Origin: Ranitomeya imitator
Lineage: Eukaryota
Length of the DNA: 64,000 nucleotides
Assembly (NCBI RefSeq): GCF_032444005.1
Contig: NC_091283.1
Coordinates: 811,580,001 to 811,644,000, forward strand
Direction of reading: 5' to 3'
This document shows, piece after piece, positions 1 to 53,958 of the stretch. The notes under the pieces are model-generated. The model did no database searches. It was not told the origin of the DNA and saw only the letters and a program-made list of their open reading frames with translations. Made by a program: the position numbers and the translations under genes. Numbering within the stretch: the stretch's first letter is position 1; each line of letters opens with the position of its first letter.

Positions 1-16
1 TTGTGTTATGTCACAG

Positions 17-10358: not shown

Positions 10359-10611
10359 CTAATCCATGGACAAGTCATCGTAGTCATAGTCTTGCTGATG
10401 ACAGTGTTCACTTTGGCCATTGACTAGCTTTTCAGTTGAGTTTTGGGATAATGAATTGCTTTGCATTAGATTTATTAATCGGTCCAGCCTGGTATCTAGA
10501 TGCTCCTGTAAACTTCTCATCCTCTTATCAATATGTGCCAAAAGTGTCCTCTCCACGCGCTCCATGTGTACGGACAGAAGCTTCTCTAACGCCGGATCCA
10601 TCTTTTCTTCT
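10359..10611 (-). CDS. PAAT: PAAT/C10orf88 last coding exon
   Basis: Acceptor tattgcag (AG 10613-10612), phase 2 matches; LEKLLSVHMERVERTLLAHIDKRMRSLQEHLDTRLDRLINL aligns to recalled human LEKILSKNMELMEKKLMDYIDQRIHELQEHIDDKI; TAG at 10361-10359. Confidence 0.88.
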
Positions 10612-11440
10612 CTGCAATAAAACACACAGACTTTAGCTAGATGCAAATGTCCTTCCGTTATTTATTATATTTTTTTTCCTTTTTGTGTTATTACTTTGTA
10701 TACTTTCCTTCTGACCATGAATCTGCAGTACGGCCAGCTTTGCACACTATTCTTTCATACAGTTCTTAGTGCACTAAACACAATAAAGGTCCAAATCCGC
10801 CGAATACAGACCAATATCTCTTACTATGAATGTAATTGACTCTGTGCGACAAGGTTGGGACGGCATTCTTAGCCTGTGAACGGAAACATTAAATGGGTTG
10901 TCCAGGCTTGGGACTCTGACTGTACTCTTATGAATACACACATTGCGCGCCGCCAGGATTCTCCGATGCCAGGAGCGGGCGGGTTTGTGACTGCAAGTAT
11001 GCAATTTCACACTTCTGGCCACATTCTGACTAGACATGTCCAGCCTTGCTCAATTCACTTATACTGAGCGAGGCCGTGCACGTCTAGTCGGCATGTGACC
11101 GCATGTATGCAAATTACATACGTTCAGTCGCACACCCACGCGCTCCCAGCACCAGAGAATCCTAACAGCATGCTGCAATGATTTACAGGTCTGCAGACAC
11201 ATAGGGTGAGACCCAAGCCTAGACAACCCTTTAAAATGCTTCTATTCACTGACCGTAAGCAGTCACCCTATAAGAAAACAAAACAGAAAACCTACTTGTA
11301 GAGTTGAGCCTAAAAGTTTGCAAGACACTGGTTTAGCATTCATATGGGTACTCCATGGCAGCCGAACCAGAGCCCTGCAAACTTCCTTTGCAGTCATATA
11401 GGATTATGTCATGTATAGGGCAACAGCAGAGGATACTTAC

Positions 11441-11763
11441 TTTAGTGCTGAGGATGGTTCTTGTCTGTTTTGTCCACATAAATTACGCAGGAGAGGCACC
11501 AAAGCGTCAGGACCCTGAGGACTGGCAGCCGAGCCTACAGTCGTTTGCAGTAGTGAAGACATAACGGACTTCATAGGATTCTCAGGACTTGTTTGTTGAA
11601 CGGAGGAGTGAGACGCAGACTCCTGACCTTGGTTTTCCACTTTTGTATCAGGAGTCGTGCTGGCGTTATGCTTATGTTGTCTGGCCTCCTCCCTGATCTG
11701 GTCTCTGCCATGCTGGAAACTGCCAAAGAGCTGCATTAACTGAGCCCCAAAAGGTGCCTGATG
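11441..11763 (-). CDS. PAAT: PAAT/C10orf88 exon 4
   Basis: Acceptor cttccttgcag, donor AA|gtaagt; HQAPFGAQL...DALVPLLRNLCGQ matches recalled human SELLPFLQNLCSQ; phases 0/2 consistent with neighbours. Confidence 0.85.
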
Positions 11764-12401
11764 CTGCAAGGAAGCAAAGAAAGAGGATTAGTGATAGCTG
11801 CAGACCAAAATCCATAGAAAACAGAAGATTCCGCTATTAATGAAAACATAGCAGAAGTGTATCCTAATGGGTCTGCCCACGTATAGGGAGTACAGATCTT
11901 GCAGGTTTGCACCACTGCATGTAAGAATTCAGTCCTCCAGAATGAGCTACAAGGGAAAGATAGTTACCTTTAACTAAAGAGATAATTTTCCTTTAAAGGG
12001 AGCTTATCTTCAGTTAAAGGGATTGTCCAATTTACATGAAAGTCTCTCTAAAGGCAAAAAAGTACAGTGTATGGAAAAAAAATAAAAAATAAAAGAACAT
12101 TCACCAGTCCAGTCACATGGCAGTCCGGAAGTCTCAGCTTGGATCGGAAACAGTGACGTTCCTCAGTTACCCGACTACTCAAGCATGTGACTGGCTGCAG
12201 CGGTCAGGTGCAAGTACATCATTTGATACATATCCCGTTACAGTCACCTGACCGATGCAGCCAATCACAGGACCACAGAGATCCGGTGACTGAATGAAGA
12301 GATATTATTGATACCAAGAGTGGCCTGCACTTGGGCGATGGGGGGAATCAAGTATTTGTTATTGAATACCAATATATGGCTTTGCAGAAACTTTTATTTA
12401 A

Positions 12402-13096
12402 AGGGAACCTGTCACCCCGTTTTTTCAGATTGAGATAAAAATACTGTTAAATAGGGCCTGCGCTGTGCGTTACTATAGTGTATGTAGTGTACCCCGATTC
12501 CCCACCTATGCTGAGAAATACATTACCAAAGTCGCCGTTTTCGCCTGTCAATCAGGCTGGTCAGGTCGGCGTGGTGACATCGCTGTTTCTTCCCCAGCTT
12601 TCCGTTGGTGGCGTAGTGGTGTGCGCATGTCCAAGTGCCAAATCCACTGCGCGCAGGTGAAGAAAAAGCGCGCGATCTGCGCTATTACCCTTGTCATCGG
12701 TGGGGGCGGCCATCTTCCTGAGGCCGCGCGTGCGCAGATAGAGTGCTCTGCTGCACGGGGCTTCAGGAAAATGGCCGCGGGATGCCGCGCGTGCGCAGAT
12801 GGAGATCGCAGCGGCCATTTTCCTGAAGCCGAGATGCAAACCTGCGCGCAGTGGATTCGGCACTTGGACATGCGCACACCACTACGCCACCAACGGAAAG
12901 CTGGGGAAGAAACAGAGATGTCACCACGCCCCCCTGACCAGCCTGATTGACAGGCGAAAACGGCGACTTTGGTAATTTATTTCGCAGCATAGGTGGGGAA
13001 TCGGGGTACACTACATACACTATTGTAATGCACAGCGCAGGCCCTATTTAACAGTATTTTTATCTCAATCTGAAAAAACGGGGTGACAGGTTCCCT
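12402..13096. mobile_element. Palindromic T2/Kolobok-type MITE nested inside another TTAA MITE (~12018-13114)
   Basis: TTAA|AGGGAACCTGTCA...TGACAGGTTCCCT|TTAA; whole 695 bp is a near-perfect inverted repeat, explaining the mirrored ORFs here. Outer element has AGGGATTGTCCAA/TTGGACAATCCCT ends. Confidence 0.85.
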
Positions 13097-13665
13097 TTAA
13101 GTTGGACAATCCCTTTAATGACAGTGTATGGAGCTGTGAGGACCCGGGCCGATCACCAATGAAGCTTGTAGCAGCTGATTGGCGGCGGCGCCAGGTGTTG
13201 AATCAGCATCGATCCGATATCAAAGTTGTAGACAGCCCCTTTAACAAGAGTATCCCTCCTGGCTGCTTAGATACAAAAGTATCACATAACCTGATCAACA
13301 GCACCTGTACAAGAAAAGATGATAAAGTGAGAGGGTGATCCAGCTCTGAGCTATACCTGTAGTGGACAGTGTGTAGTTCCAAACGCTCCAAAACCGTGCA
13401 CTTGTGTCCCCTGACTACAATACAACATATTATAGGACTATAGCAACGTCAGCGAGAAAAAGGTGAAGAAATACCGGTCCTGGGTGTCAACTGGGCAGAG
13501 ATTTATACACAGGGAGAAAATACAGAAAGTTTCTATCGCATGACAACAAGCAGAGATCCTGAAAACCATGAAGACTGACTGCAGACAGAATACTGGAGTA
13601 TTGTAGAACACTTAATAACAGAACGAATTACATTTATTTACATCTAATATATAAAGGTGTGTGTG

Positions 13666-13839
13666 NNNNNNNNNNNNNNNNNNNNNNNNNNNNNNNNNNN
13701 NNNNNNNNNNNNNNNNNNNNNNNNNNNNNNNNNNNNNNNNNNNNNNNNNNNNNNNNNNNNNNNNNNNNNNNNNNNNNNNNNNNNNNNNNNNNNNNNNNNN
13801 NNNNNNNNNNNNNNNNNNNNNNNNNNNNNNNNNNNNNNN
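13666..13839. other. Assembly gap (174 N) next to a (TG)n tract
   Basis: Run of n characters. Confidence 1.
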
Positions 13840-14319
13840 CGTCGCAGCTACAGCCACAACATTTTACACAGTCACACGTCTGGAACCCGAGAGCGTCATA
13901 GGCTATGTTGTGAGGCGAAATCTTAACCCTGCGCGTTCCAATTCACCAAACAATTTTGCCCCTATCCCTACATGGAAAAATTGCTACATGCACAAAAGTT
14001 GCAACACACAAAACTTGCACCTTCTCAAAACGCACCACACATAAAACTCGCCATGAGCAAAACTTGCTGCACACAACTTGCTACACTAATCAGGCACATG
14101 CAACTCGACACACAAAAAGTTGCTACACGCATGTTGCCACACAAAACTCAAAATACGGCACCTGTCAGTCACATGGCCTGTCTATTATGTGTATGTGTGA
14201 GCTAATATATACTGCCAGGGGGAGGGCTTCCTGTTGGCTGGGGATTTATCAGGCTGCCAATTTAGTTTACAAATACTGAGGTAAAAATACTGACTAAATA
14301 ACGTGTGAACGCGGTCTAA

Positions 14320-15830
14320 TACAGGAGGAGATGACACACAGATATATACTATATACAGGGGAGATGACACACAGATATATACTATATACAGGAGAGATGA
14401 CACACAGGTACATACTATTTACAGGGGAGATGACACACAGGTACATACTATATACAGGGGAGATGACACACAGGTACATACTATTTACAGGGGAGATGAC
14501 ACACAGGTACATACTATATATAAGAGGAGATGACATACAGGTATATACACTATATACAGGAGGAGATGACACAGGTATATACTATATACAGGAGGAGATG
14601 ACACGTATATACGATATACAGGAGCAGATGACACACAGATCTATACTATACACAGGAGGAGATGACATACAGGTAACTATATATAAGAGGAGATGACATA
14701 CAGGTACATACTATATACAGGGGAGATGACACACAGGTATATACTATACACAGGAGGAGATGACATACAGGTACATACTATATACAGGAGGAGATGGCTT
14801 ACAGGTATATACACTATATACAGGAGGAGATGACACAGGTATATACTATATACAGGAGGAGATGACACAGGTATATACTATATACAGGAGGAGATGACAC
14901 AGGTATATATTATATACAGGAGGAGATGACATACAGGTATATACTATATACAGGAGGAGATGACATACAGGTACATACTATATACAAGGGCGATGACACA
15001 CAGGTATATACTATACACAGGAGGAGATGACATACAGGTACATACTATATATAGGAGAAGATGACACGTATATACGATATACAGGAGCAGATCACACACA
15101 GATCTATACTATATACAGGAGGAGATGACACAGGTATATACTATATACAGGAGGAGATGACATACAGGTACATACTATACACAGGAGGAGATGACATACA
15201 GGTAAATACTATATACAGGAGGAGATGACATACAGATATATACTATATACAGGAGAAGATGACACATAGGTATATACAATATACAGGAGGAAATGACATA
15301 CAGCAGGTATCTACTATATAATTGTCTAAGGGTCACTTCCGTCTGCCCTCCTGTCTGTCTGTCACGGATATTCATTGGTCACGGCCTCTGTCTGTCATGG
15401 AAATCCAAGTCGCTGATTGGTCTCGCCAGCCGCCTGTCATAGCTACCGCGACCAATCAGCGACGGCCACAGTCCAATTAGTCCCTCCTTACTCCCCTGCA
15501 GTCAGTGCCCGGCGCCCGCTCCATACTCCCCTCCAGTCACCGCTCACACAGGGTTAATGCCAGCGGTAACGGACTACGTGGCTGCTATATACATATTCTA
15601 GAATACCCGATGCGTTAGAATCGGGCCACCATCTAGTATACTATATACAGGGAAGATGACATACAGGTATATACGATATACAGGGGAAATGACATACAGG
15701 TATATACTATATACAGGAGAAGATGACACATAGGTATATACAATATACAGGGGAGATGACATACAGGTATATACTATATACAGGGGAGATGACATACAGG
15801 TATATACTATATACAGGAGATGACATATGG
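14320..15830. repeat. ~30-35 bp minisatellite (TATATACAGGAGGAGATGACACACAGGTATATAC), interrupted at 15310-15636
   Basis: Tandem copies directly visible; source of the repetitive MTHRYILYTGE ORFs. Confidence 0.9.
15310..15636 (+). mobile_element. Second short Helitron nested in the first
   Basis: A|TCTACTATATAATTGTC start; CCCGAT-gcgttaga-ATCGGG hairpin at 15606-15625; CTAG|T end at 15633-15636. Confidence 0.75.
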
Positions 15831-16266
15831 GTGTATATTATATAAAAGGGAGATGACAAACATGTATATACTGAGGGGAAAATGAGAGGTGTGAGGTGAA
15901 AATGAGGGGTGTGAGGTGAAAATGAGGGGTGTAAGGTGAAAATGAGGGGTGTAAGGTGAAAATGAAAAGGTGCAAGTGCAAAATGAGAGGAGTGATCGGA
16001 AAATGACAGATGTGAGGTCGAAATGACAAGTGTTAGGGGGGAATGAGAGGAGTGAGGGGAAAATAAGAGGAGTGAGGGGGAAAATGAGAGGCGTGATGGA
16101 AAAATGAGAGAAGTGAGGTGCTATAACTAAGCACAGATACTTACTATGCCCAGGCAACGCCGGGCTCTTCAGCTAGTAAACAATAAATCTCAATACATTT
16201 TATATCCAACCAGAAATGTGAAAATAAGCAAGCATTGTTATTATATGCCGCATTATGTGCGCTCAC

Positions 16267-16473
16267 CTTCTGCTGTGCACGCACCATATTCATAAGTTGC
16301 TCTGCCCCGGGTGACATTTTCCCGCCCATGCTGTCCATAATGCTCTGCACACGATCCAGATTAATGGACGACCCCGGCACATATGGCGCTTGAGGACATC
16401 TATCAGGGACAGGGGTTATTTGTACTGAAATCTCGCTCACCAGGACACTGCACCGGCCGCCGAGTGACAGAAG
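16267..16473 (-). CDS. PAAT: PAAT/C10orf88 exon 3
   Basis: Acceptor ttttctgtcttcag, donor AAG|gtgagc, 207 bp, phase 0/0. LLSLGGRCSVLVSEI...INLDRVQSIMDSMGGKMSPGAEQLMNMVRAQQK matches recalled human LLSFGERQCVFISKV...IDLDKVQTIMESMGSKLSPGAQQLMDMVRCQQR. Confidence 0.92.
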
Positions 16474-16749
16474 CTGAAGACAGAAAAGTCAGTGAGTAAA
16501 ACTTCTAAATATTAGCCAGAACGTAAAAGATATAACCGACTGAAAGAGACATGTGGTTTTACCTAGAACAGTTAGCAGAATGGCATCCCCATACACACAC
16601 AGGCTTAATGTCAATATTGATATTTATGGGGCTTTTTAAATTAAAAAAATATATAGGCTGAACTCTGTACGTGCCCCACAGACAGGTTGACAAGAAGCTG
16701 CAACAACAAAGGTAGATCTAGTAGAAGCTTCTCCAGTCACTCTGATTAA

Positions 16750-17200
16750 CCCTGTACACGCAGCCATGTCCGCTTCCAGTGGATTAACCCTTTACAAGCA
16801 GCCGTCTTCCTCTAGATTAAACCTTTACAAGCAGCCATGTCTTCCTCTAGATTAAACCTTTACAAAAGCAGCCATGTCTTCCTCTAGATTAAACCTTTAT
16901 AAGCAGCCATGTCTTCCTCTAGATTAAACCTTTACAAGCAGCCATGTCTTCCTCTACATTAAACCTTTACAAGCAGCCATGTCTTCCTCTACATTAAACC
17001 TTTACAAATAGCCATGTTCTCCTCTAGTAGATTAACTTTTTACAAGCAGCCATGTCCACTTCTAGTGGATAAATCCTTTACAAGTAGCCATGTCTCCTCC
17101 TTGTAAATTAACCCTTTAAAAGCAGCCATGTCCTGTTCTAATGGATTAACCCTTTACTACCAGCTATGTCCTCTTCCTGTGGACCTGTGGATTAACCCTT
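16750..17200. repeat. ~35-37 bp minisatellite (TTAAACCTTTACAAGCAGCCATGTCTTCCTCTAGA)
   Basis: Tandem copies degrading toward the ends. Confidence 0.85.
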
Positions 17201-18082
17201 TACAAGCCAACCTATCCTTATCTATTAGATGGGCTGCATATTACAGAGACATCATATTACATGGCTGAAAAATAATATTCAGTTTGTGAAAAAGTTCAGG
17301 CTCCTGACAGAAGATGAGGAAAAGTTTTGCCTCATATGCGTTTTGCCGATTCGCTGCCCATTTGGATGCATAGGTGAATTCAAACCGTCATTTTAATTTC
17401 TATTACACAAATGAATAATACACAAGAAAGTAAGAAACTTTGTGATATATGTTATCAGGGAAATTTGCTTCTTTTCTCCTCCTGGACTGTGGTTACACTC
17501 GCAGTTCGTGGGTAGCATAGGTAATAAGTGAAGACATATTTTTGCATTACTGAGAAAGATGACAGTTGGTGTAGTTACAATAATATGGAAGGGGGAGGAG
17601 CTAGAGGCCGACACAGACATTCTGCTGCAAGTTCTCACTTCTCCATAGAACCTTATGAGCACCAACTATCATCTCCTCTCGGTAATGGGAATGTCTCTAT
17701 TCCCTGAAGACATATTTTTACCTTGAATTGAGAATTTTGAGAAAGAATGATCAGTATAGGAGGAGAAAGAAGATTTCTATAATAAACTTTGTAATATATC
17801 TTTTTATTTTCACATTTGCTATCGATTTATAAGAAAAAAAATTAAGTGACGGTTATAATTTAACATTGATAAAAACGTATAGAAAATTTACAAAACAGTA
17901 GTAAAATTTCAGTCGATTGGTTGTAATGCCAAATTGATTGAATTAACCCCTTTCCTGTGGTGTGAGGAACACATCATATCTCAGGTGCTGGTGTATGGAG
18001 TGGACTCAAGATCGACACCATATTTGCTCAATAGCATCTGTGAAGAACTCTCATCTGCTGCCATGTTTAGCCAAAAACGTAC

Positions 18083-18377
18083 TTTAACAATACAAGACGG
18101 CACCGGGAATTCGAATTTCAGGTGAGCTTTGTACAAAACTGCAGGACTTTCTTCTCCACTGCTCTCCAAAGTGCAAAATCTCTCCCCTCGACTGGTACCC
18201 AAGTACTCCTCTTCTTTGCCATTCTGCAACGCGCTGTAGATCTCAATAGTCCGGGCTTCACTATGGATCGTAATCCCCAGGATCCGATCCTTCCCTTGTG
18301 CTGCACACAGTAAAGACAAGGTGCATGAGTTGTCTCCTTTAGAGGGTGTCGGTAGCTCCAGAAGTACACAATGCTCC
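18083..18377 (-). CDS. PAAT: PAAT/C10orf88 exon 2
   Basis: Acceptor tttctttctcag, donor AAA|gtacgt. CTLSLLC...ILGITIHSEARTIEIY...EEYLGTSRGERFCTL...LYKAHLKFEFPVPSCIVK matches recalled human SSARNMEVY..EEYCGTSRG..LYKKNLKLE..ACKIK. Confidence 0.92.
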
Positions 18378-18546
18378 CTGAGAAAGAAACACAATGACAA
18401 ATATACATTAGTGACTTAATTCTTCTTCATATCTTCTGTCCAGATTTGTGAGGGGGGGGAGGGAGTCGCAAGTAGCATAAAAGTGGAGGAAATTTTGTAA
18501 AATAATATTTAAAAAAATCTGCAGTGGATATTGATGTGGATTTTAA

Positions 18547-19044
18547 CCCCTCCCTGCAATAGGACGTACTGGTACATTATATGTTGCGTCCAGGTGCATG
18601 TAGTGGGATCAGAAGTTGAGCCTGTAGCATACAGCACACGTATAGGGCGGCATTGGCCTCTAAAAGCAGCAACCAGAGCCAGCTCTCATTGCTGCAGTTT
18701 AACCATTTGAATGCTGCCATCAATATTTCAACTTTAATAAGTTCCCACTGCAATGAGATTGTGGGAAACCAATGAATTGTCATGTCATCTGGGGGGCTTA
18801 CTTTCCGTACCATCTTGGTGCTCCGATGAATCATAAGTAACTCCCTCTTAAAAATGCAATAAAAACATTGCATGTACACCAAATATTTTTTTAATTACAC
18901 AAATTTCTCCATTTTTTTTTTAATAAATAAATTTAAAAAAAAAGCAAGCCTACGTGTACACAAAAACTAAAAAGTTATGAACCTTAAAAAAAGGGGAGGA
19001 AAAATAAAAGTACAAAAATAAAAGACTGCCCTGAAAAGAAGGGG
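18547..19044. mobile_element. piggyBac-like TTAA non-autonomous element
   Basis: TTAA|CCCCT...AAGGGG|TTAA termini. Confidence 0.55.
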
Positions 19045-19448
19045 TTAAATCTGCCGGACGTCCCTTTAAGCTGTCGGTTTTGACCTTTGCGATGTGAAAT
19101 CTGTACGCACTGGGTCAAGTTTCGGCACAGACATCACTCACCCTGATGCAATGCAAAGGGCAATATGTGCACGTGATTATATCCTGGGGGAGGGGCGGGG
19201 GGGCACACCACACCATCACATTATATTCCAGGGGTCTGCAACCTGTGGGATTCCTGCAGCTGTGCAACTACAACTCCCAGCAGTCTGGGAATGGCGCCGA
19301 TTGCCGACCCCTAGTCCTGGAAAACACATGATTTTGGAGGGGGAAAAAAGACTATAAACTGGTTATGCTAATAATAAAATACCCCAATAATTGTAGGGGT
19401 GGCAGACTCCTTGCATGGGTGACAGACCCCCTTAAATTGAGTTCTCAC

Positions 19449-19600
19449 CTAGAGGGAGTCTCCTCGTCATTTTGGGCAGGACAGTCCGCGGCAGACAACT
19501 TCAGCACAGATGCCAGCTCAGCCTGGCACCGCCAGGAGCTAGAACACAGCATGGGAGGCTGAGGACGCCCGGCCAGCAGGTCAGACCGTGGTCCGGACAT
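19449..19600 (-). CDS. PAAT: PAAT/C10orf88 first coding exon
   Basis: ATG at 19600-19598, MSGPRSDLLAGRPQPPMLCSSSW... (human has the SSW motif), donor AG|gtgaga phase 2. Five exons sum to 1230 nt = 409 aa + stop. Downstream in-frame ATG (MLCSSSW) is an alternative start. Confidence 0.8.
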
Positions 19601-31232: not shown

Positions 31233-31251
31233 ATCTCTAGTCTCCATTTAC

Positions 31252-31541
31252 AGGGAAAAAATGGATACACATGGATTCACTCTGCTGCTGAATAACTGGA
31301 AGTCCGGGCGTATTATCAATATAGATTGTGGTTTTTATTCATTCAATGCGTTTCAGAATTCTAAGACTTCTTCATCAGGAAACACCACAAAAGGGACATT
31401 TTGTGGTGTTTCCTGATGAAGAAGTCTTAGAACTTTGAAATGCGTTGAATGAATAAAAACCACAATTTATATTGATAATACGCCCGGACTTCCAGTTATT
31501 CAGCAGCAGAGTGAATCCACGTTTACCCATTTTTTTTCCCT
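31252..31541. mobile_element. 290-bp fold-back element with a hammerhead-ribozyme-like motif in each arm
   Basis: Arms meet at loop GGGACA (31393-31398); CTGATGA 31413-31419, stem II GAAGT/ACTTT, GAAA 31437-31440. Confidence 0.7.
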
Positions 31542-33702: not shown

Positions 33703-35300
33703 GCTATTACTGGAGTGTTTTGCCGTGCACCCGAAAAGATTAGATGATTGTTCCTTTCTCAAATTTTCTATTATCTAGTGATACCCATATGTTTGGCTTC
33801 TATGATCTCATATCACACTGCTTTGCAGTTTTTAATAAATTTATATCATTTTTAAAACTTACAATAAAGATACTGACAAAAACACTTCATTAGATATCTG
33901 ACATTTATCCACTCTGGTGTACAATGTCCACACAATTTCAATGATGAAAATGGCAATGCATCTGAGCAGTTTCAAACGTCTAAGATTATGAGAGTACTGT
34001 GCTGTAGATCACCAATGCTAATACATTCCTCTAAAAAAAAAAGGTTATCAGCCGGAGTTCCTGGAGGTATACCATAAGGCTGGAATCACCCACACAGTTT
34101 TTGGTGCAGTTCGGACTGGCTGCTTGTCTCTTGGCCTGAACTCAACAGCCTTATTCATGTCTATGAAACTGATGAGTTTGGGTCGGCAGATATGCGATCA
34201 GTCCGTGCTCCACAGCACTGGTCACTACTGAGCACGTGCATAGAGTGCGGCACAGATTCATCTCAACTAAAAGTTAAGATCCTTAGATTAGAAACAGAAC
34301 AGACATTTAAAGAACAATTCAGAACTTTCCTAAATTCTTATGAAAACATTTATAGCACATCCTGCATTTTATTACTGTATCCAATTTATTATATTTTAGG
34401 AGTCCGAGTCGGTCAATTTTATACTGACTCAGACTCCACAGCCCTGTGTGAAACCGGCCTAAGATTATGTGCACACGAATCTTTTTGCAGAGTTTTCGGA
34501 GTAGTACTTTCAAGTTTTTGAATAGGATTTGGGGAGTCTCCGCTCAGTTTCTACTCCAAAACCTCCTAAAAAAAAAAACTGTGTGCACATACCCTATGGG
34601 TGGATTTACACATGGTAGATGTATTGCAGGAATTTCTGCACCTGTTCCGCTCATGTAAATGGAACTTGCAGAAATCCATGCACTTGCCACCAAAACAATC
34701 CCATTCAAATGAATGGAAATAATTCTCTGCTGCAGAAACTCTGGCAACTAAATCTGCCACATATGGAGCCACCCTTCAGGTTTGTGCACACTAGACTAAT
34801 CTACTGCAAATTTTGTCATAGAAATGCTGAATATTTCGTCCTTTGTATTGCAAAGAGTGAAGTTAGCAGATAAGGTCGGATTCACACATCCACCGTTCAT
34901 GGTTCGAGTACAGATCGGCTGCAGGTCCTCTAACCAGAGCTCAAAAGCCTCATATATCCCTTTGACGCTGTCAGGAGACCTGTAACCAGTCTGTTCTCGG
35001 ACCGCAAATATCAGATGTACAAAGCCGGCCTAAAAGCAGCAAAATTCAAACCCACAGCGCCGGTTGATTTACATTACAGATTTTATCTGCAGAATGTGAA
35101 CTAAATTTCAGAAAAAACAAAATTCAACCTCAATACTGCCACTGTAATAAACAGATTTCCCATCCAAAACATCTGCTGCATATAAGACCGATGTGCACAT
35201 TCATACACTTATTCTCTCTGCTTGAACTTCGGGGGGGAAAAAAAAAGGGTCAAAAACTGCACATGTGATTCCAGCATTAAAAAGTCTTTTTTTGTCCCCT

Positions 35301-38024
35301 TCACTCTCGTGCTAAATGAGAAGGAAACGTTAAAGGCGAAGTTTTAGATTTTCCAGATTTGCGTTCGTAATTCACAAGGCGTTGGCCAACAAGGTACTTG
35401 TCATTCTTAATGTGTTCATAAAGCCGCTTGAACTGTCGGATTTGGAAAGACAGGACACCCATTAATATCACCACCATCAGCAAGAAGGGATAGATGCGTC
35501 GCTGGACTAGAGTCTGCATTTCGTAGGTGACACCGACCAACAGTACAATAGCGGCAGAAATAATGTAAGGTATACACAGCGACAGCAAAAGAACAGCAAT
35601 GACAGGAGCGGCCAGTTTACCAAGTATGAAGTGGAGATCGATGTTGCGTATTCCGTTAGCGTAGACCTGTTCTATCACAGTTTTCAACCACCACTGAGGA
35701 CCCATTAGAGTTATGGCCGCTATTATCTTTGCATGCAAAACGCCGAGGGCCCAGTCCTGCCACGGATAAAAAAGTGGCGTCTGATCCAGAGGAACACGAA
35801 GAGGTGCAACAATAATCAGTTCAAATAAAAGACCAAGGAGGAGAGGGACAACTCCGGCCAGAAGGAAAGCGACAATTAGGGTCTTCATAATTGTTAGCGA
35901 CCATTCTTTAACTTTTAGGAGGATCACATGACGTCCTTGTGGCATCCACGCGAACAGTACAGTTAGTGCTCTAATAGACAGCCAGCAAACATAGAGACCA
36001 CAGGCGGCCGTGTATAATTCATGGATTTTTGCAGTCCCAGTCCAAAATGACATCAACCAACGCCCTACAAAAACTGGGAGCGTCAGGCAAACTAAACTAG
36101 CAATCAGTAACGTGATGCACATGAAAATAATTAATAAAAATATCCGGAGAGGAAATCTGACTGGTTTATGGTACGGCTGGAATCCTACAGGTCCTCCTTG
36201 CTGTAAAATGGCTTGATGAGCAGCATGCAGACCTTCGCCAACCACAGGGATGGCATTATTTCGGATAAGAGGATTATTTGCGGCCTGTTGATTTGCTTGG
36301 TTGTCAGTATCCTCTTGGTCTCCGAGAAGATAAGAGTGCAAGTCTAGTAGAAAGCCAACTGTTACAGTCCAAGCCCTGACCAGTCCTTTCAGCCATTGTC
36401 GAGTATGTCCTTGCTCTAATAATGCCGGGAGAACAACCTGGAGAAGCAGCAGTTCTAGGGATAACTCGCTCACGGGGGCGTCGCTGTATAACATCACGTT
36501 GTACGGTAAGAAGGTCGGCAGCACGTGCTTCATAATACGAATGGGAAGCCAAAGCATCAGTATCACGATAGATCCAAAGACAATCACAGATAGTAAAAAC
36601 CTCCGGACGTGCCTATAGATCGGCAAGTGGATCATTTCCTGGACTGGGTTAAAATCTGGATCATTCAAATTTCGGAGAAACCAAAGGACCCCCGGTCTTA
36701 GCACTTCACGTAGAAGCAGGATGAAAGATGCAAAGTAAAAGACGTAAACCATGCCGACCAGCCAGTGAAGAAACATGGTTGTTCCCGGGGCGGACTGGAA
36801 GCTCAGTTCTCGATCTTTCAGAGAGGCGTCAAACATTTCCAACGAGCAAATGTCCAACCACCAGCCACAAATAAGGGGGAAAACGCCAATCTCCACAACG
36901 ACCAGTAGAGAAACCTTCACCACGATGTAGCAGATGCCCAATATTCGTCTGGATCGCTGAAACTTGACAACCGCGGCTAAGCTGTGGCAGAGGATCAGCG
37001 TGACGGCCAACAAGACGTAGCCGACTATGGTCGTAAGAAGCCCTTCAAAGTGTGAGGCCTTCACATAGCTGTCAAATCCCAGCCCGACTACGGAGAAGTG
37101 TCCAATGTGGTAAGGACAGAAGGCGAACACCAGGATGAAGAGGGTATTCAGCGACACCACCCAGAAGACGTGCTCCAGGAACACCAGCGACCCATCCAGG
37201 CCCAGCATCCGCTCCCAGGTCAGCTCCTCGGCAGCGCGGTCCCACTCTAGAGCGTTCCAGTTCATATCGTCCTGCGCGCCATTGTTGACATCGGCGGCAT
37301 CTTCGAGAACGGCGTCATCTTCGTTGTCTTCTTCCTCGTCTTCTGCCTGATCGGGATTTTCACCCACCACCACGTTCTCCACCGGAGGGATGGCGGGATG
37401 GTCCATAGCAGCGTTTTCCACCACGACGTTGCCGGCGCCTTGCGCTTCGTTTTGCTGGGCCGCGCCGTTCTGCGGCTGAGGGAAGTTTTGCTCCAGCCAT
37501 AGAGGCGCACCGCCGTGGACGATCTGTTCTCTCAGCCAGACCAGGCTTATGAACGCGCAGAGCGTGCAGGTGACCACGAAGACCCCCTGCAGACAGTCCG
37601 CCAGCAGGTTCTCCGTGGAGAGCATGTCCAGGGGGAGGGTGAGGAGGGAGCTGACCGAGCCGGTGAACAAGCACTTGTAGATGCGGCACGCCGTCAGCGG
37701 CACCACGCCCAGCCACGCAAACGCCACCAGGGTGTAGTGGAACCAGTAGCGGATGGCGGTGCCAATGCTGGTGACCAGTCCGGTGCAGATGTCCTGGATG
37801 GGCAGCCGGGAGGGCATGTCCGGGGAGTAGATGGGGGTGAAGGCAAATCTGTGCTTACACAGCTCGCAGTACTCCTTCCTGCTGTGCTTCAGCCATTGCA
37901 GCAGGCACTCCTGATGGATGAACTTTATACTGCCGGTGCACACGCACGGGTGGTACAGGGGCTTCTCCGCGGTGCCCTCAGAGCGACAGACCCTGCAGAT
38001 GTCTTCCTCTTCTGTCGCCTCCAT
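35301..38024 (-). CDS. MARCHF6: Intronless MARCHF6 (TEB4/Doa10-family RING-CH E3 ubiquitin ligase), 907 aa, probable retrogene
   Basis: Single uninterrupted ORF. True ATG at 38024 in strong Kozak context (agaATGG); the track start at 38042 is a GTG. RING-CH CRVC..CVC..HQEC..CELC, TD-domain region WLDICSLEMFD..FLHWLVGMVYVFYFA, and C-terminal YLVGQRLVNYE all intact and colinear with recalled human MARCHF6. Confidence 0.96.
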   Translation of the reverse strand: MEATEEEDICRVCRSEGTAEKPLYHPCVCTGSIKFIHQECLLQWLKHSRKEYCELCKHRFAFTPIYSPDMPSRLPIQDICTGLVTSIGTAIRYWFHYTLVAFAWLGVVPLTACRIYKCLFTGSVSSLLTLPLDMLSTENLLADCLQGVFVVTCTLCAFISLVWLREQIVHGGAPLWLEQNFPQPQNGAAQQNEAQGAGNVVVENAAMDHPAIPPVENVVVGENPDQAEDEEEDNEDDAVLEDAADVNNGAQDDMNWNALEWDRAAEELTWERMLGLDGSLVFLEHVFWVVSLNTLFILVFAFCPYHIGHFSVVGLGFDSYVKASHFEGLLTTIVGYVLLAVTLILCHSLAAVVKFQRSRRILGICYIVVKVSLLVVVEIGVFPLICGWWLDICSLEMFDASLKDRELSFQSAPGTTMFLHWLVGMVYVFYFASFILLLREVLRPGVLWFLRNLNDPDFNPVQEMIHLPIYRHVRRFLLSVIVFGSIVILMLWLPIRIMKHVLPTFLPYNVMLYSDAPVSELSLELLLLQVVLPALLEQGHTRQWLKGLVRAWTVTVGFLLDLHSYLLGDQEDTDNQANQQAANNPLIRNNAIPVVGEGLHAAHQAILQQGGPVGFQPYHKPVRFPLRIFLLIIFMCITLLIASLVCLTLPVFVGRWLMSFWTGTAKIHELYTAACGLYVCWLSIRALTVLFAWMPQGRHVILLKVKEWSLTIMKTLIVAFLLAGVVPLLLGLLFELIIVAPLRVPLDQTPLFYPWQDWALGVLHAKIIAAITLMGPQWWLKTVIEQVYANGIRNIDLHFILGKLAAPVIAVLLLSLCIPYIISAAIVLLVGVTYEMQTLVQRRIYPFLLMVVILMGVLSFQIRQFKRLYEHIKNDKYLVGQRLVNYERKSGKSKTSPLTFPSHLARE

Positions 38025-38039
38025 TCTGGGGGACGCAGC

Positions 38040-38340
38040 CACTTGCGACGTCTAACAGCGCGGCCCCTGCGGGCTTCCGTACCGCCGACAAGCAGCAACA
38101 GCGACTAAAGCGACCGAAGGTCCTCGGCCTGCGACCAAAACAACGGTCTCCGTCACAGATTGTCTCGCGATGTTTAGAAGGCGGAAGTGACGTAGGAAAG
38201 GAAGGACGCGGAGTACTTCCTGGTGCAGTCACGTGATCATTGCCACGCACGCGCAGTCTGTGTCTGACTGTGACCGCCTGGCCGGTGGTGCCTGCTGCTG
38301 CTGCTGCTGCGGCGCCATGCGGAGTCCGTAGTGGTGACTT
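38040..38340 (-). promoter_or_regulatory. CpG-island promoter / 5' UTR of the intronless MARCHF6
   Basis: CpG-dense. TCTCGCGA 38163-38170 (BANP/ZBTB33-type), GGCGGAAGTGACGT ~38180-38193 (ETS + CRE half-site), opposite ETS ACTTCC ~38215, E-box GTCACGTGAT 38228-38237, (CTG)n ~38292-38309. Confidence 0.75.
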
Positions 38341-39684
38341 ATTGCGGACTTTGCCACGGAATCTCACCCAGAGCGCAGGGAGAGGAGTACAGACTACTCA
38401 CTGAGGCTAATTACACTCCATTATGCGAAGGGACCTGTCCACACGGACACGTAGCTGCCTGCATAGACTATCACACCCATCCGTTTGGACACATTTGTGC
38501 ATGTTTCCGTTTTTTTGTATCCGTTTATTTACTACTAGACCACCGCTGCGTAATCTCTTGAGGACCCCATAGGGATTAGCAGCTTACACTCTGTCCCAGC
38601 GATGTCAGCACTGCTATTCTTGGCGGTGACCGCTGCAGCCAATCAGCCAGTGCATGTACCCGTCACATGACAGCAGCCTGCGAATACTGGCGCTGAGGGA
38701 AGTGGCTGTGCACTGATTGTATTATTTATGGGGTCCGGTAGTGGGAAACTCGGGAGCCGGAGAACAAAGTCTGCCGAACTGGTGTATTCTTTAAATAAGG
38801 GAAGCTACATGGATCCATTTGGGTTCACATTGTGTTAATAGCAGCCCGTTCAGCACATACGTTACCAGGCTGCTGTTAACGCAAGTGCCGGCATGGCAGC
38901 ACGCTAGCGCAGATGGAGCATTTGCTAGCTCTATCTGCTCTAGGGGGACGGACCCGGAAACGCTGCAGCCCGCGTCTCGGGGTCCGTCACACAATGACAG
39001 CACACCGCTAGCGCACACTCATTATTGGATTCAATGGCGGCGTTAACAGACCGCGTTATGCCGCGGTGTAACGTAGTCCGTCTAACGGACGGGTTTAATG
39101 CAATGTGAACCGGATTGTCGAAGACTTATTTTTCTGAAATATGGGCTTAAAAACAACAAGCAGGTCATCGACCGCTCCTGCCGGTGACTCAGCTTCTGCA
39201 CAGCAGCAGAGCAGCTCTTCCAGGCCGCTCTGTTGACAGTGACTGCTGATGTCATTCTGAGTGACAGCCGTCTCCCTGCTGTTAGGTAGTAGGGAGCCAG
39301 CTGTCAGTCTGCAGTCACTCAAAACAGCGGAAGAGAAGCCGCAGCTCTGTCAACGTGACTTCAGCGGAAGCCACAAAATAACCAGCTGTGACCAATCTAT
39401 GCGGCAGAGATCGGCGCGAAGCAGAACAGGCAGCTAGGTGGCAAATAACTGCTTGTTAGTTCTTAGGCCCATAGTAAACGCAATGAAATAGTCCCAGATA
39501 ACGCCTTAAAGATTAAATGAAGATTCTGAAAATCCTGTTCCTCTCCTGCAGTTTGTTTAAAAAACAAATTGGGCTTTACTCCCCCTTCCTGGGTCCAGCA
39601 TTAACTCCACTGCTGCTCCCGGTGACTGTTATTGTCTGCAGTGTTGATGCTACATCGACTGCAATTCAGCCAATCGATGAGCTA

Positions 39685-40960
39685 AGCTGCCCGTCACATC
39701 ACAGCTGCCCGTCACATCACAGCTGCCATCACATCACAGCTGCCCTTCACATCATAGCTGCCATCACATCATAGCTGCCCGTCATATCATACCTGTCCGT
39801 CATATCATAGCTGTCCGTCACATCACAGCTGCCCGTCATATCATACCTGTCCGTCATATCATAGCTGTCCGTCACATCACAGCTGCCCGTCACATCACAG
39901 CTGCCCGTCACATCACAGCTGCCCGTCACATCATACCTGTCCGTCATATCGTACCTGTCCGTCATATCATAGCTGCCATCACATCACAGCTGCCCGTCAC
40001 ATCATAGCTGCCATCACATCACAGCTGCCCGTCACATCATAGCTGCCATCACATCACAGCTGCCCGTCACATCATAGCTGCCATCACATCATAGCTGCCC
40101 GTCATATCATACCTGTCCGTCATATCATAGCTGTCCGTCACATCACAGCTGCCCGTCACATTACAGCTGCCCGTCACATCATAGCTGCCATCACATCATA
40201 GCTGCCCGTCACATCATAGCTGCCCGTCACATCACAGCTGCCCGTCACATCACAGCTGCCCGTCACATCATAGATGCCATCACATCATAGCTGCCCGTCA
40301 CATCATAGCTGCCATCACATCACAGCTGCCCATCACATCATAGCTGCCCGTCACATCAAAGCTGCCCGTCACATCACAGCTGCCCGTCACATCATAGCTG
40401 CCCGTCACATCACTGCTGCCCGTCACATCATAGCTGCCCGTCACATCATAGCTGCCCGTCACATCACAGCTGCCCATCACATCACTGCTGCCCGTCACAT
40501 CACTGCTTCCCGTCACATCATAGCTGCCCGTCACATCACAGCTGCCCGTCGCATCACAGCTGCCCGTCACATCACAGCTGCCCGTCACATCACTGCTGCC
40601 CGTCACATCACTGCTGCCCGTCACATCACAGCTGCCCGTCACATCATAGCTGCCCGTCACATCATAGCTGCCTGTCACATTATAACTGCCCGTCACATCA
40701 AAGCTGCCTGTCACATTATAGCTGCCCGTCACATCATAGCTGCCTGTCACATTATAACTGCCCGTCACATCATAGCTGCCTGTCACATTATAGCTGCCCG
40801 TCACATCATAGCTGCCAACACATAATAGCTGCCCGTCACATCATAGCTGCCTGTCACATTAAAACTGCCCGTCACATCATAGCTGCCCGTCAGATCTTAG
40901 CTGCCCGTCACATCATAGCTGCCTGTCACATTATAGCTGCCATCACATCATAGCTGCCTA
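39685..40960. repeat. 18-bp minisatellite (CACATCACAGCTGCCCGT)
   Basis: Dozens of tandem copies; source of ARHITA/DVTGSY repetitive ORFs. Confidence 0.95.
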
Positions 40961-41015: not shown

Positions 41016-42595
41016 CAGGTCCTTCTCAAAAAATTAGCATATAGTGTTAAATTTCATTATTTACCATAATGTAATGATTACAATTAAACTTTCATATATT
41101 ATAGATTCATTATCCACCAACTGAAATTTGTCAGGTCTTTTATTGTTTTAATACTGATGATTTTGGCATACAACTCCTGATAACCCAAAAAACCTGTCTC
41201 AATAAATTAGCATATTTCACCCATCCAATCAAATAAAAGTGTTTTTTAATAACAAACAAAAAAACCATCAAATAATAATGTTCAGTTATGCACTCAATAC
41301 TTGGTTGGGAATCCTTTGGCAGAAATGACTGCTTCAATGCGGCGTGGCATGGAGGCAATCAGCCTGTGACACTGCTGAGATGTTATGGAGGCCCAGGATG
41401 CTTCAATAGCGGCCTTAAGCTCATCCAGAGTGTTGGGTCTTGCGTCTCTCAACTTTCTCTTCACAATATCCCACAGATTCTCTATGGGGTTCAGGTCAGG
41501 AGAGTTGGCAGGCCAATTGAGCACAGTAATACCATGGTCAGTAAACCATTTACCAGTGGTTTTGGCACTGTGAGCAGGTGCCAGGTCGTGCTGAAAAATG
41601 AAATCTTCATCTCCATAAAGCATTTCAGCCGATGGAAGCATGAAGTGCTCCAAAATCTCCTGATAGCTAGCTGCATTGACCCTGCCCTTGATGAAACACA
41701 GTGGACCAACACCAGCAGCTGACATGGCACCCCACACCATCACTGACTGTGGGTACTTGACACTGGACTTCAGGCATTTTGGCATTTCCTTCTCCCCAGT
41801 CTTCCTCCAGACTCTGGCACCTTGATTTCCGAATGACATGCAAAATTTGCTTTCATCAGAAAAAAGTACTTGGGACCACTTAGCAACAGTCCAGTGCTGC
41901 TTCTCTGTAGCTCAAAAGTGGCTTTACCTGGGGAATGCGGCACCTGTAGCCCATTTCCTGCACACGCCTGTGCACGGTGGCTCTGGATGTTTCCACACCA
42001 GACTCAGTCCACTGCTTCCTCAGGTTCCCCAAGGTCTGGAATCGGTCCTTCTCCACAATCTTCCTCAGGGTCCGGTCTCCTCTTCTCGTTGTACAGCGTT
42101 TTCTGCCACATTGTTTCCTTCCAACAGACTTACCATTGATGTGCCTTGATACAGCACTCTGGGAACAGCCTATTTGTTGAGAAATTTCTTTCTGGGTCTT
42201 ACCCTCTTGCTTGAGGGTGTCAATGATGGCCTTCTTGACATCTGTCAGGTCGCTAGTCTTACCCATGATGGGGGTTTTGAGTAATGAACCAGGCAGGGAG
42301 TTTATAAAAGCCTCAGGTATCTTTTGCATGTGTTTAGAGTTAATTAGTTGATTCAGAAGATTAGGGTAATAGGTCATTTAGAGAACCTTTTCTTGATATG
42401 CTAATTTATTGAGACAGGTTTTTTGGGTTATCAGGAGTTGTATGCCAAAATCATCAGTATTAAAACAATAAAAGACCTGACAAATTTCAGTTGGTGGATA
42501 ATGAATCTATAATATATGAAAGTTTAATTGTAATCATTACATTATGGTAAATAATGAAATTTAACACTATATGCTAATTTTTTGAGAAGGACCTG
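41016..42595 (-). mobile_element. Tc1-family IR/DR transposon, 1580 bp, TA TSD
   Basis: TA|CAGGTCCTTCTC...GAGAAGGACCTG|TA; 200-bp TIRs (left 41016-41215) identical by eye; direct repeat AAATTAGCATAT at both ends of each TIR. Confidence 0.95.
41294..42266 (-). pseudogene. Tc1 DD34E transposase with one frameshifting deletion near 41913
   Basis: MGKTSDLTDVKK paired-like HTH N-terminus; FSDESK, FQHDLAP and SPDLNPIENLW catalytic motifs; frame break after QVKPLL. Confidence 0.9.
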
Positions 42596-51360: not shown

Positions 51361-53958
51361 TTTAGTCAAGTATGTTTTCCAAGACCTCCTTCCTAGCTTC
51401 ATGTCTGGGAAGGGGGTAATAAGGATTGTAATGAAGCTTGTAAGCCCCAATTCAAAATCTACAATAGTGCCTCCATCCATCACAGGCCTCTAATAGAATT
51501 GGTCTGATATGGGTCAAAGGGACCTTTTGGGCCCAACCTCTGCATTCTCTATAAATACGCCCCTGCCTACAAATTCCTTACGGCATGTCTCAGGTATCTG
51601 AAGTCGTGCTCTAGGTTTGGCCTTGTATTGTGTGTAGTTCTTGCGTATTCTGTTCTTCACAGTGTTAAGCAGTTGTATACACGGCGGCGGCATTATCCTG
51701 TATGTAAATAAGCCTTCTGTGCCTTACATGGTCTGCACACAGACTGAGTCATCTTTAGCTAATTCTTCTCCACTCCAGGGTTGTCTACAAGGGTCAAATA
51801 ACTTGTGAGACTGGTTCCTACACATACCTGAGAGCTGGGGAGCACTCCAGTGCAAGTTATCAGCAAACTCTCATTCTCCAACCTGCCAGGAAAGGGCTGA
51901 GACCTGGCTCTTCCAGTTTTGTGAAATGATTGTGTCACAGGACCAGGGTCTGTCTTCACAATGAGGAACCCAAAAACGCTCAAACCGCCATATTCAGATA
52001 TGGGGGAGAAGTGGCTGCTGCTGGGTTTCCTTTATCTTTCGCTGAACGGTGAGTAATTTGGGTGACAGAACGGTGCACATGTGGGGAGTGGGGACCTAGG
52101 AAGTCCTAGTAATACACTCGGCAGGGTGTAATATAACCATGAGAAAGAATGGGGATCTGATCCGTCAGGACTCAAAGTTCGGGATTACTTTGTCCTTTGT
52201 GTCTTTTGCTCCTTTTCTTACTTTCTTAGTGACCTGCAATACTTTTCCCATTCTCGTTTCCTATCGTCGACATTTATGGCTAAGGATTGGAGATAGGCAA
52301 CCTTAATCACTTCTGTCTCGCCATAGCTGATATGCTTTCTACCTTGGCATTGTTATGGAACCTGCCTATCCAGGAAGGTGACTGCTTACATACACGGCAA
52401 TCCTTATTATAATGTTTATTGGTATTAGCAGCCATAATATTATTATTACTATATTATTATAGCCCGAGCTCGGGGAATTTGTCTCATCCAGTCCATAACT
52501 ATACGTACAGAGGTGGCTATTACATTATGGGTTTGGCTATTATCCATGTGGTAGAGCTAGATACTGTAATAACGACCCCATTACCTGCTCTAGGTTCCTA
52601 CTGTTTTGTGCCTCTGATTTTATAGCTGTGGCAGGCCCCTTTGCGTGCTTTATTTTACAGGTATTCTCCACTAGAAATATCTCCTTCCTTGTAGATGAAA
52701 ACCGTTTTCACTCCATCCGTGAACAAGGGTCCGATTTTTCGGATCAGACTTTGATCAAAGCGGCATCAATTTTTCTAGAACGTAGAAAGAAAATGTCTCC
52801 ATTTTTGGACACGTGCACAGGCCCATATCATAGGCACAAGGCTATTCGTGAAAACCACAGATAGGACTCATCCAATATAATCGATCGCATGCACGAGTAT
52901 TTGCAAGTGAGGGGATATGCGATACACAATGAACATAGTAATAGTTCTGGACCATCATTAGGGGGTTTCAAAGTGCACCATGCGCAATCTAGAAGGACGT
53001 TGGAAGCTGCAATTTTGGACCAAAAGCAAAACAAGAAAAGAATGCACATCCCAAAAAATACATTTTTAAATATTTATTATGTATTCAAAAAAACGTCCAA
53101 CCAAAAAAAACATTTAAAAAACAACATTTTGAAAAGTACTACGCTAATAAAATAAACTGCTATCCCCCATATGGCTAGAACTAACACCACCACTATCATA
53201 CACACTGTATTAGGGTAGTAACCTTCAAAATTGTGTTTTTGAAAATGTCTGTGTCTTTGTGTTGAAAGTTTTAGATACACAATTAATATTTCAAAATTTA
53301 ATTTGCAGCCTTTTTTCGACACCTGCCTAGAACTTTTGCACATTATTGTACATACAGTAGAATGCTTTTAAAGGGTGGTTACACTAAATTTGGATGCATA
53401 TTGCCCTTTTACTCATTCGCGTTGCTGTCATATAATCAAATTAATAGAAGCCATGGTGAGATCTAGGGGAGAAAAAACATTTGAGGGCGCGTTTAAAATA
53501 ATATGTGTTGTACTATGGGTTTTACTTGGTTAGCAGCATACCTTCAAGTATAAGGCATTTTAAGAGCTCGTACATTGTGGTCATTATTAAGAAAAATGTA
53601 GTCTGGGCAAAGATTCTGTTTGCAGTCATAGCCCTGTATCTAATTGCCCTGATTGAGACTAAGTGTCTTTTTGGCTTTCACCACCTCTTTCCCCCATGTA
53701 TCCAGCGGAGACCCTCTCAAAGAAGTGTTCCATTTGTTCCGTATGGATGTATCAGGGTAATGCAAAGACAAGTCAGAAACATTCTAAACCAGACTTTAGT
53801 CAGAGTAAGGTCCTAACTTTGGTTTAGTTGAACTGTCGAGGTCAGTGTCGTGTCCTCTATAGAGAACATGAAACAATGCCATATTTTGAAGTATGAAACC
53901 AGAATAAAGAACTATATAAATGGTTGCCACTTTCCCCATCTACGTTTTTGTGGGTTTC

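Follow-up and report, generated by a model that had tools for sequence, protein, structure and literature searches.

The 64,000-nt stretch of the Ranitomeya imitator genome analysed here (contig NC_091283.1, positions 811,580,001 to 811,644,000 of the forward strand; called the window below, with positions counted from its first letter) carries an uninterrupted gene for MARCHF6, an essential ubiquitin ligase of endoplasmic reticulum-associated degradation (ERAD). This gene is probably a processed retrogene that took over from a 26-exon parent. It is intronless in several assemblies, close relatives have a multi-exon gene, and the former exons are joined seamlessly in the window, which bears out the reading as an intronless retrocopy given in a first-pass annotation of this DNA. 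The synteny of the gene is shared between frog families, the gene is under purifying selection, and its synonymous sites have shifted in composition.

The MARCHF6 gene of the window

35301..38024, minus strand: MARCHF6 coding sequence (CDS), 907 codons plus stop, intronless (open reading frame, Pfam, protein identity, exon collinearity)

In the list of open reading frames (ORFs) of the window, the gene is a single long minus-strand ORF (35301..38042) whose first ATG, at 38024, gives 907 codons and a stop; the coordinates agree exactly with those proposed in the first pass for an uninterrupted 2.7-kb MARCHF6 ORF (35301-38024). The landmarks then said to be intact are present in the translation: the RING-CH domain (RINGv, PF12906, residues 10-56, E 2.4e-15), in which the C4HC3 ligand pattern is matched, and the C-terminal element GQRLVNY. 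There is also a MARCHF6_C domain (PF23113, residues 700-873, E 9.7e-54), and both Pfam scores far exceed the cut-offs. In a search of a 5.8-billion-protein collection, the window protein had full-length matches in R. imitator (100% identity), Phyllobates terribilis (99%), Eleutherodactylus coqui (95%) and Bufo bufo (94%), with 86-89% identity to the remaining vertebrate MARCHF6 proteins and 98-100% coverage of the annotated MARCHF6 matches. It is identical to a 907-amino-acid (aa) Ranitomeya protein in the collection (P0123), and differs from that of R. variabilis at 5 residues. Given 86-100% full-length identity to vertebrate MARCHF6, a 2.7-kb ORF in DNA of 43-54% GC is not a product of chance; the gene is already labelled MARCHF6 in RefSeq-type annotations.

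By homology, the protein would have the ordinary ERAD role of MARCHF6/Doa10, as a RING-CH E3 ligase of the endoplasmic reticulum membrane, and homology together with the strong constraint described below makes it a candidate for ubiquitin-ligase activity on ERAD substrates. It is like MARCHF6/TEB4 and yeast Doa10 in its N-terminal RING-CH (C4HC3), its MARCHF6_C region, the GQRLVNY element and its full length. The window gene differs from these in gene structure only; its protein is of a somewhat diverged hyloid type, which is common to the multi-exon hyloid genes.

Intronless and multi-exon MARCHF6 among frogs

A gene was called intronless where its recorded range equals the length of its CDS. 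The recorded ranges are as follows:

Bufo bufo: 2742 bp, intronless
E. coqui: 2736 bp, intronless
P. terribilis: 2724 bp, intronless
R. imitator: 2727 bp, intronless
Engystomops pustulosus: 2742 bp, intronless (2 assemblies)
Hyla sarda: 119.7 kb, multi-exon
Dendropsophus ebraccatus: 85.5 kb, multi-exon

The Pyxicephalus gene is likewise multi-exon. When rebuilt, the Dendropsophus gene has 26 coding exons and 25 GT-AG introns, in agreement with the more than 20 exons that the first pass ascribed to vertebrate MARCHF6, and its spliced CDS translates exactly to the annotated protein. The window ORF is collinear with all 26 exons, and every one of the 25 junctions is seamless, with no indel; the sole length difference between the two CDSs is a 4-residue deletion in the acidic linker. 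Mapped from Dendropsophus, the former exon junctions fall at these positions in the window CDS (minus strand):

Junctions 1-9: 38006, 37906, 37832, 37688, 37615, 37446, 37271, 37209, 37176
Junctions 10-17: 37124, 37065, 36984, 36915, 36840, 36705, 36585, 36484
Junctions 18-25: 36346, 36144, 36074, 35892, 35757, 35667, 35534, 35398

A pair of isoforms, with and without one glutamate at the exon 1/2 junction, is found in each of Hyla, Dendropsophus and Rhinoderma, consistent with an alternative (NAGNAG-type) acceptor; the window gene corresponds to the form with the glutamate (+E). Because it has this pair, Rhinoderma must have at least intron 1, and its MARCHF6 is very probably multi-exon.

A second Dendropsophus entry, annotated as a "LOW QUALITY MARCHF6-like" protein (P0127), was considered as the relic of a hylid retrocopy and rejected, its gene range being 63 kb and multi-exon. 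It is a 635-aa partial model on an unplaced 110-kb contig (JAQFWY010001725.1; L013). Its upstream sequence is identical to that of the main locus over the ~90-nt stretch compared, so that the entry probably represents a haplotig or a recent duplication.

The two ends of the copy

38025..38165, minus strand: 5′ untranslated region (UTR), ~141 nt, homologous to the 5′UTR of hylid MARCHF6 mRNA (alignments with hylid RNA-type contigs and other loci)
38162..38238, minus strand: proximal promoter block (alignment; shuffle-tested similarity)
38228-38238, minus strand: E-box GATCACGTGAC, in the promoter block
38215-38222, minus strand: ETS-like motif CAGGAAGT, in the promoter block
38186-38195, minus strand: CRE-like (cAMP response element-like) motif CTACGTCACT, in the promoter block
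33828..35300, minus strand: 3′UTR (blastn, alignments)
34075..35279, no strand assigned: 1.2-kb insertion in the 3′UTR (inverted repeat, 29-nt terminal inverted repeats, TAA/TTA ends)

The MARCHF6 start codon of the window stands in the Kozak context cccagaATGg, and alignment places the equivalent of the transcription start site at the motif TCGCGAGAC (38162-38170). Upstream of the transcript 5′ end, all of the retrocopy loci have an ordered set of motifs in common: E-box, ETS-like, CRE-like and TCGCGAGA. The parental promoter of Dendropsophus keeps the same order (GATCACCTGAC ... TACGTCACTCGCTGACCT ... CGCGAGA). Between the parental region from -150 to 0 and three retrocopy loci the summed local-alignment score is 72 (null 47±4), a value reached by 0 of 1000 dinucleotide shuffles; a control region, from -800 to -400, gave no similarity signal between the parent and these loci. 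Homology among the retrocopy loci begins at the E-box, which is therefore placed as the likely 5′ end of the copy. We infer that the template RNA may have begun ~70-90 nt upstream of the main start site, bringing the core promoter along.

Retrocopies that inherit a parental promoter by way of an upstream start site are said to have been reviewed by Casola and Betrán in 2017. The MARCHF6 copy would resemble them in the ~70-90 bp of parental upstream DNA, with the same ordered motifs, found at its 5′ end; for MARCHF6, promoter inheritance is suggested by sequence similarity to one parent species, with start sites placed by alignment.

At the 3′ end, a conserved block of the 3′UTR (33849-34072) is common to the retrocopy loci, the Dendropsophus genomic sequence and the hylid transcripts, and an ATTAAA signal lies inside ATTTATTAAAAAC (33828-33840). 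Similarity between retrocopies and parent ends just past ATTTATTAAA (33828-33840), at a short A run; past this run, the retrocopy loci share ~40 nt among themselves, which the parent does not have. To judge from these alignments, the boundary looks like that of a copied mRNA ending at the ATTAAA poly(A) site.

The hylid MARCHF6 transcripts (contigs from SRR5149372-SRR5149537) extend ~330 nt beyond the ATTAAA site where the retrocopy ends. Since they read past it, the parent uses at least two poly(A) sites. These transcripts also have an internal run of A14-A16 in their 3′UTR. The hylid A16 run was considered as the relic of a poly(A) tail and rejected, conservation running on for ~25 nt beyond it in all sequences.

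The 1.2-kb insertion lengthens the MARCHF6 3′UTR of the window about five-fold. The window contains one copy of it, and the 3′UTRs of E. coqui, Engystomops and the hylids have none; the insertion looks like a lineage-specific non-autonomous DNA transposon.

The probable insertion site

51961..52050, plus strand: exon 1 of an ADAM-family gene, a signal-peptide exon followed by a GT donor (blastn and tblastx to E. coqui and Engystomops; translation)
10359..19600, minus strand: PAAT (C10orf88), downstream of MARCHF6 and on the same strand, with ATG at 19600 and stop at 10359 (Pfam PAAT-like, tblastx)

ADAM exon 1 is the immediate upstream neighbour of MARCHF6 in the window, and stands head to head with it; the domains of the ADAM gene are known from annotated orthologues only. 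On the downstream side, Pfam PAAT-like matches fall on exon ORFs at 17984-18415 and 16147-16488, and by tblastx the PAAT exons of the window align exon by exon to the annotated Engystomops PAAT. Exons with ZP-N and ZP-C domain matches at 1-1993 (plus strand) are compatible with CUZD1, as a candidate orthologue. The first pass had put the gene between CUZD1 and PAAT: PAAT does lie downstream and the ZP exons fit CUZD1, but the upstream neighbour is the ADAM gene, so that the interval is ADAM-PAAT.

The same arrangement is met in other families. In E. coqui an annotated ADAM gene, whose exon 1 matches window positions 51961-52050, is head to head with MARCHF6, as is the annotated ADAM gene of Phyllobates. 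Engystomops has an unannotated 783-aa upstream gene, with an exon 1 that matches the ADAM exon 1 of the window, and PAAT is annotated downstream. Since this ADAM/PAAT microsynteny is common to Phyllobates, E. coqui, Engystomops and the window, the insertion would be old and single. The pattern argues for one ancient insertion shared across families, and it fits the earlier view that the copy is not recent.

The spacer between ADAM and MARCHF6 is 14 kb in the window vs. 3.5 kb in Phyllobates, a difference explained in part by Tc1/mariner and Ty3/gypsy elements. Between MARCHF6 and ADAM exon 1 there are Ty3/gypsy and Tc1/mariner elements at 45677-49696 and 41294-42377, both on the minus strand. 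The Ty3/gypsy element has open ORFs for gag (435 aa) and pol (891 aa, with reverse transcriptase, RNase H and integrase) and is possibly recent; the Tc1/mariner part of the spacer consists of transposase ORFs.

Selective constraint and protein divergence

The ratio of nonsynonymous to synonymous substitution rates (dN/dS) was estimated pairwise by the Nei-Gojobori method for three intronless CDSs, those of the window, E. coqui and Engystomops. Among them dN/dS is 0.024-0.035, at dS 0.87-0.98; for two hylid parental sequences it is 0.042. Retrocopy-parent dS is 1.5-1.7, a value inflated partly by non-stationary composition. The ORF is intact in every intronless-type species examined. The retrogene is thus under strong long-term purifying selection, as the first pass had supposed, and this selection, with the intact ORFs, excludes a processed pseudogene or an artefact.

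A set of 3.4-kb RNA-type contigs from 67 runs (L002-L009) was considered as retrogene transcripts and rejected: their CDS is near that of Dendropsophus (dS 0.27), with a GC content at third codon positions (GC3) of 0.34. Variants among these contigs are 99.7-99.9% identical to one another. The contigs are hylid parental-type transcripts.

In the protein tree, all of the intronless proteins, together with the untyped ones of Anomaloglossus, Bufo gargarizans and Leptodactylus, form one clade (support 95/94), in agreement with a single insertion, although the tree is not decisive by itself. The hylids and Rhinoderma fall outside this clade, inside a strongly supported hyloid clade. The stem branch of hyloid MARCHF6 is long (0.079 substitutions per site) and leads to the multi-exon genes of Hyla, Dendropsophus and Rhinoderma as well. 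Because these multi-exon genes share the long stem, the protein differences predate retroposition, and the possibility that the 86-89% identity reflects relaxed or adaptive evolution after retroposition was rejected on the same ground. The divergence described in the first pass is therefore real (86-89% identity to non-hyloid vertebrates) but not tied to retroposition, all hyloid MARCHF6 proteins having it in common.

Two further observations concern the protein. A single cluster, at a 90% identity threshold, takes in the MARCHF6 proteins of coelacanth, Ascaphus, Xenopus and Rhinophrynus, and there was a burst of MARCHF6 protein change in the hyloid ancestor, before retroposition.

Synonymous GC content

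GC3: retrocopy CDSs 0.61-0.66; hylid parental CDSs 0.34-0.35
GC content at fourfold degenerate sites (GC4): retrocopy CDSs 0.62-0.70; hylid parental CDSs 0.28
CpG observed/expected ratio (o/e): retrocopy CDSs 0.68-0.96; hylid parental CDSs 0.31-0.35
37001..38500, no strand assigned: CpG island-like zone covering the promoter, the 5′UTR and the first third of the CDS (500-bp windows; GC 0.58-0.62, CpG o/e 0.65-0.95)

Silent sites of the retrocopies are much richer in G and C than those of the hylid parental genes, most of all towards the 5′ end: GC3 of three retrocopy lineages is 0.74-0.87 in the first 200 codons and declines to ~0.45-0.55 at the 3′ end, while parental GC3 is flat, at ~0.35 along the CDS. 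At fourfold sites, 76 of 375 have G or C in all three retrocopies and A or T in both parents; the reverse pattern occurs at 1 of 375. Many additional fourfold sites have G or C in just one or two of the retrocopy lineages, which points to a continuing drive. Because the flanking DNA has 40-47% GC, the rise is not a drift to local composition.

Functional retrogenes are known to be GC-enriched, with a median gain of 11.5 GC4 points in 49 mammalian pairs (Mordstein et al., 2020, PMC7181179), and GC peaks centred on transcription start sites (TSSs) have been ascribed to recombination, GC-biased gene conversion and hypomethylation (PMC11323403). MARCHF6 resembles the GC-enriched retrogenes and intronless genes of these studies in that synonymous GC is higher in the retrocopy than in the parent and is maximal at the 5′ end, in surroundings that are not GC-rich. 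It differs in extent from the mammalian pairs (PMC7181179): the MARCHF6 shift of +34 to +41 GC4 points, vs. a median of +11.5, is about three times larger. The shift may be due to selection for export or expression, or to a promoter hotspot of biased gene conversion.

Fate of the multi-exon parent

Replacement of the parent is the most likely history of the window gene, which would make it an "orphan" retrogene. The starting point would have been a spliced MARCHF6 mRNA of full length, reverse-transcribed in an early hyloid frog and inserted between the ADAM gene and PAAT. The template, of the +E isoform, would have started ~70-90 nt upstream of the main start site, carried the E-box, ETS, CRE-like and TCGCGAGA promoter elements, and ended at the proximal ATTAAA poly(A) site; the inherited core promoter would have made the copy transcribable, and the retrogene is presumed to be expressed. 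Poison frogs, toads, Eleutherodactylus and leptodactylids would later have lost the multi-exon parent along their ancestral lineages, and treefrogs and Rhinoderma would have retained it. With the whole CDS now less than 3 kb from the start site, silent sites would then have moved from A/T to G/C, to a large extent overall and most strongly at the 5′ end.

The first pass had offered two options, a second MARCHF6 or a relocated replacement of the parent, of which the latter fits better, as each annotated genome has a single MARCHF6 protein. All hyloid-type MARCHF6 proteins of the collection fall in five clusters, which were fully enumerated. One MARCHF6 gene each was found for Bufo bufo, B. gargarizans, E. 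coqui (2 assemblies), Engystomops (2 assemblies) and Leptodactylus, and likewise for the dendrobatoids Anomaloglossus, Phyllobates, Dendrobates and two Ranitomeya species; the sole extra entry in these clusters is the partial multi-exon duplicate of Dendropsophus. Replacement is the better reading because annotation has picked up the multi-exon gene in all other frogs, and would be expected to have done so here had a functional one remained.

Several points weigh against it. The one-copy count comes from protein annotations, and would miss a parent, in Ranitomeya or the others, that is decayed, unannotated or hidden by an assembly gap. No RNA evidence for the retrogene was found, the 3.4-kb RNA-type contigs having proved to be hylid. 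The 5′ end of the hylid mRNA is that of assembled contigs, and if these are 5′-truncated the "promoter" block may be in part 5′UTR; the 5′ limit of the copy, ~70-90 bp upstream of the assembled hylid transcript 5′ end, would fit either an upstream start site or truncated contigs. In the protein tree, the approximately unbiased (AU) test cannot reject a grouping of dendrobatoids with hylids (p = 0.106), and an amino-acid bias driven by GC could help to group the retrocopies. The direction of the GC shift is read from retrocopy vs. hylid CDSs, without an outgroup CDS. No neighbour gene of the multi-exon parent was seen within 10 kb, and relocation is argued from non-homologous flanks and human map positions. 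Finally, no long poly(A) tail is visible at the retrocopy loci, where just AAAAA follows the ATTAAA, as had been noticed for the window in the first pass. At a dS of ~0.9, surviving poly(A) tails or target-site duplications are not to be expected, and the missing tail is thus no argument against retroposition.

The foremost alternative is that the retrogene is functional as a second copy, and that a multi-exon parent persists in the intronless-type species, missed by annotation or assembly. Pseudogenes and unannotated genes are indeed invisible in a protein collection, and gene calling in large, repeat-rich frog genomes may miss long genes. This must be set against the 10 annotated or gene-called assemblies of hyloid species of intronless or untyped kind, with exactly one MARCHF6 protein each, and against the ready annotation of multi-exon MARCHF6 in the hylids and in all outgroups. 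Moreover, the retrocopy is no less constrained than the parent, as would be expected of a sole copy. A persisting parent accordingly seems unlikely.

Less probable still, with only a slight chance of being right, is the loss of all introns in place, by recombination with a cDNA at the original locus, in which case ADAM and PAAT would be native hyloid neighbours. The DNA upstream of the start site placed by alignment does resemble the parental promoter, as if the two had never been separated, but this likeness is limited to ~90 bp, the control region showing none, and homology at the 3′ end stops at the poly(A) signal. In its favour, too, no neighbouring gene was visible beside the multi-exon MARCHF6 of either Hyla or Dendropsophus. 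Against it, the 10-kb flanks of the Dendropsophus parent have no homology to the retrocopy flanks, and contain neither ADAM exon 1 nor a PAAT exon; in the retrogene species these exons are 3.5-14 kb from the gene. In human, PAAT and CUZD1 lie on 10q26 and MARCHF6 on 5p15. From the non-homologous flanks of the Dendropsophus parent and these map positions, relocation would be the better account than in-place intron loss.

A dead processed pseudogene, or an assembly artefact from cDNA contamination, with a frame open by chance, has in its favour only the general fact that most retrocopies are pseudogenes, and its probability is negligible: at least five independent assemblies, from different families, carry the ORF intact in one and the same syntenic position, dN/dS is ~0.03 at dS ~0.9 (nowhere near the value of 1 named in the first pass as grounds for doubt, along with a contaminating cDNA, which the intact gene across assemblies counters), and there are species-specific changes in the genomic context, namely the 3′UTR transposon and other transposable elements in the flanks.

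Related cases and significance

Orphan retrogenes, which replace the parental gene, are a known class (Ciomborowska et al., 2013, PMC3548309; Carelli et al., 2016, PMC4772013). The MARCHF6 case is like those described (PMC3548309, PMC4772013) in being an intronless copy under purifying selection, probably made from an mRNA and probably relocated, with a parent that is no longer found in the carriers and is kept by related lineages. What sets it apart is the gene concerned, a housekeeping ERAD ligase of 26 exons, 910 aa and 14 transmembrane segments, in frogs; parent loss is here seen from annotations only, and the parent survives in sister families, so that both states can be compared directly. 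A full-text literature search found no description of a MARCHF6/MARCH6 retrogene, and for anuran retrogenes nothing relevant was found among the titles listed or in the frog-genome paper that was checked. Within the literature searched, a MARCHF6 retrogene thus appears to have gone unreported.

The ERAD ligase MARCHF6 is highly conserved and encoded by a single-copy gene, and its apparent survival as a sole-copy retrogene in species from four large hyloid groups would make a clear non-mammalian example of the replacement of a parental gene by retroposition. As sister families have a spliced gene of 85-120 kb, one protein can be followed with and without introns in a matched comparison of regulation, CpG content, synonymous composition and the inheritance of the promoter. 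With the GC4 jump and its 5′-to-3′ gradient, the reasons for the GC-richness of intronless genes become directly testable: data on polymorphism, methylation and recombination in frogs could tell selection for export or expression apart from biased gene conversion centred on the TSS. Whether a species has the insertion is, in addition, a discrete character for hyloid phylogeny.

A more far-reaching proposal is put forward only tentatively, as being rather more likely wrong than right. Parent and retrocopy may have coexisted through the rapid early hyloid radiation and then been sorted reciprocally, the 26-exon gene remaining in treefrogs and Rhinoderma and the retrogene in poison frogs, toads, Terrarana and leptodactylids; the alternative would be one replacement on a single stem. 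The locus would then serve both as a rare-genomic-change marker and as a clean natural experiment on one protein, in which the large, 5′-weighted rise in synonymous GC after intron loss in a GC-poor housekeeping gene would have been driven by selection for expression of an unspliced mRNA, and not only by biased gene conversion. If long coexistence and reciprocal sorting did occur, the marker would apply to the disputed hyloid backbone.

Other repeats

Several further stretches of the window are repetitive. At 28385-31295, several frames are open on both strands and GC skew is strongly negative (-0.2), a pattern suggestive of tandem or low-complexity repeats; Pfam matches obtained in this stretch were rejected as spurious products of low complexity. 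Tandem repeats of short period occur at 14200-16100, 39680-39800 and 63280-64000; they show up either as directly repeated motifs or as periodic peptide-like ORFs. One short-period repeat block is in a PAAT intron, adjoining a run of N at 13666-13839.

In Dendropsophus, the ~8 kb just upstream of the multi-exon MARCHF6 promoter (L010, 1487-9719) have ORFs of up to 2263 aa, with more than one plus-strand frame open, as if a long array of tandem repeats lay directly against the parental promoter.

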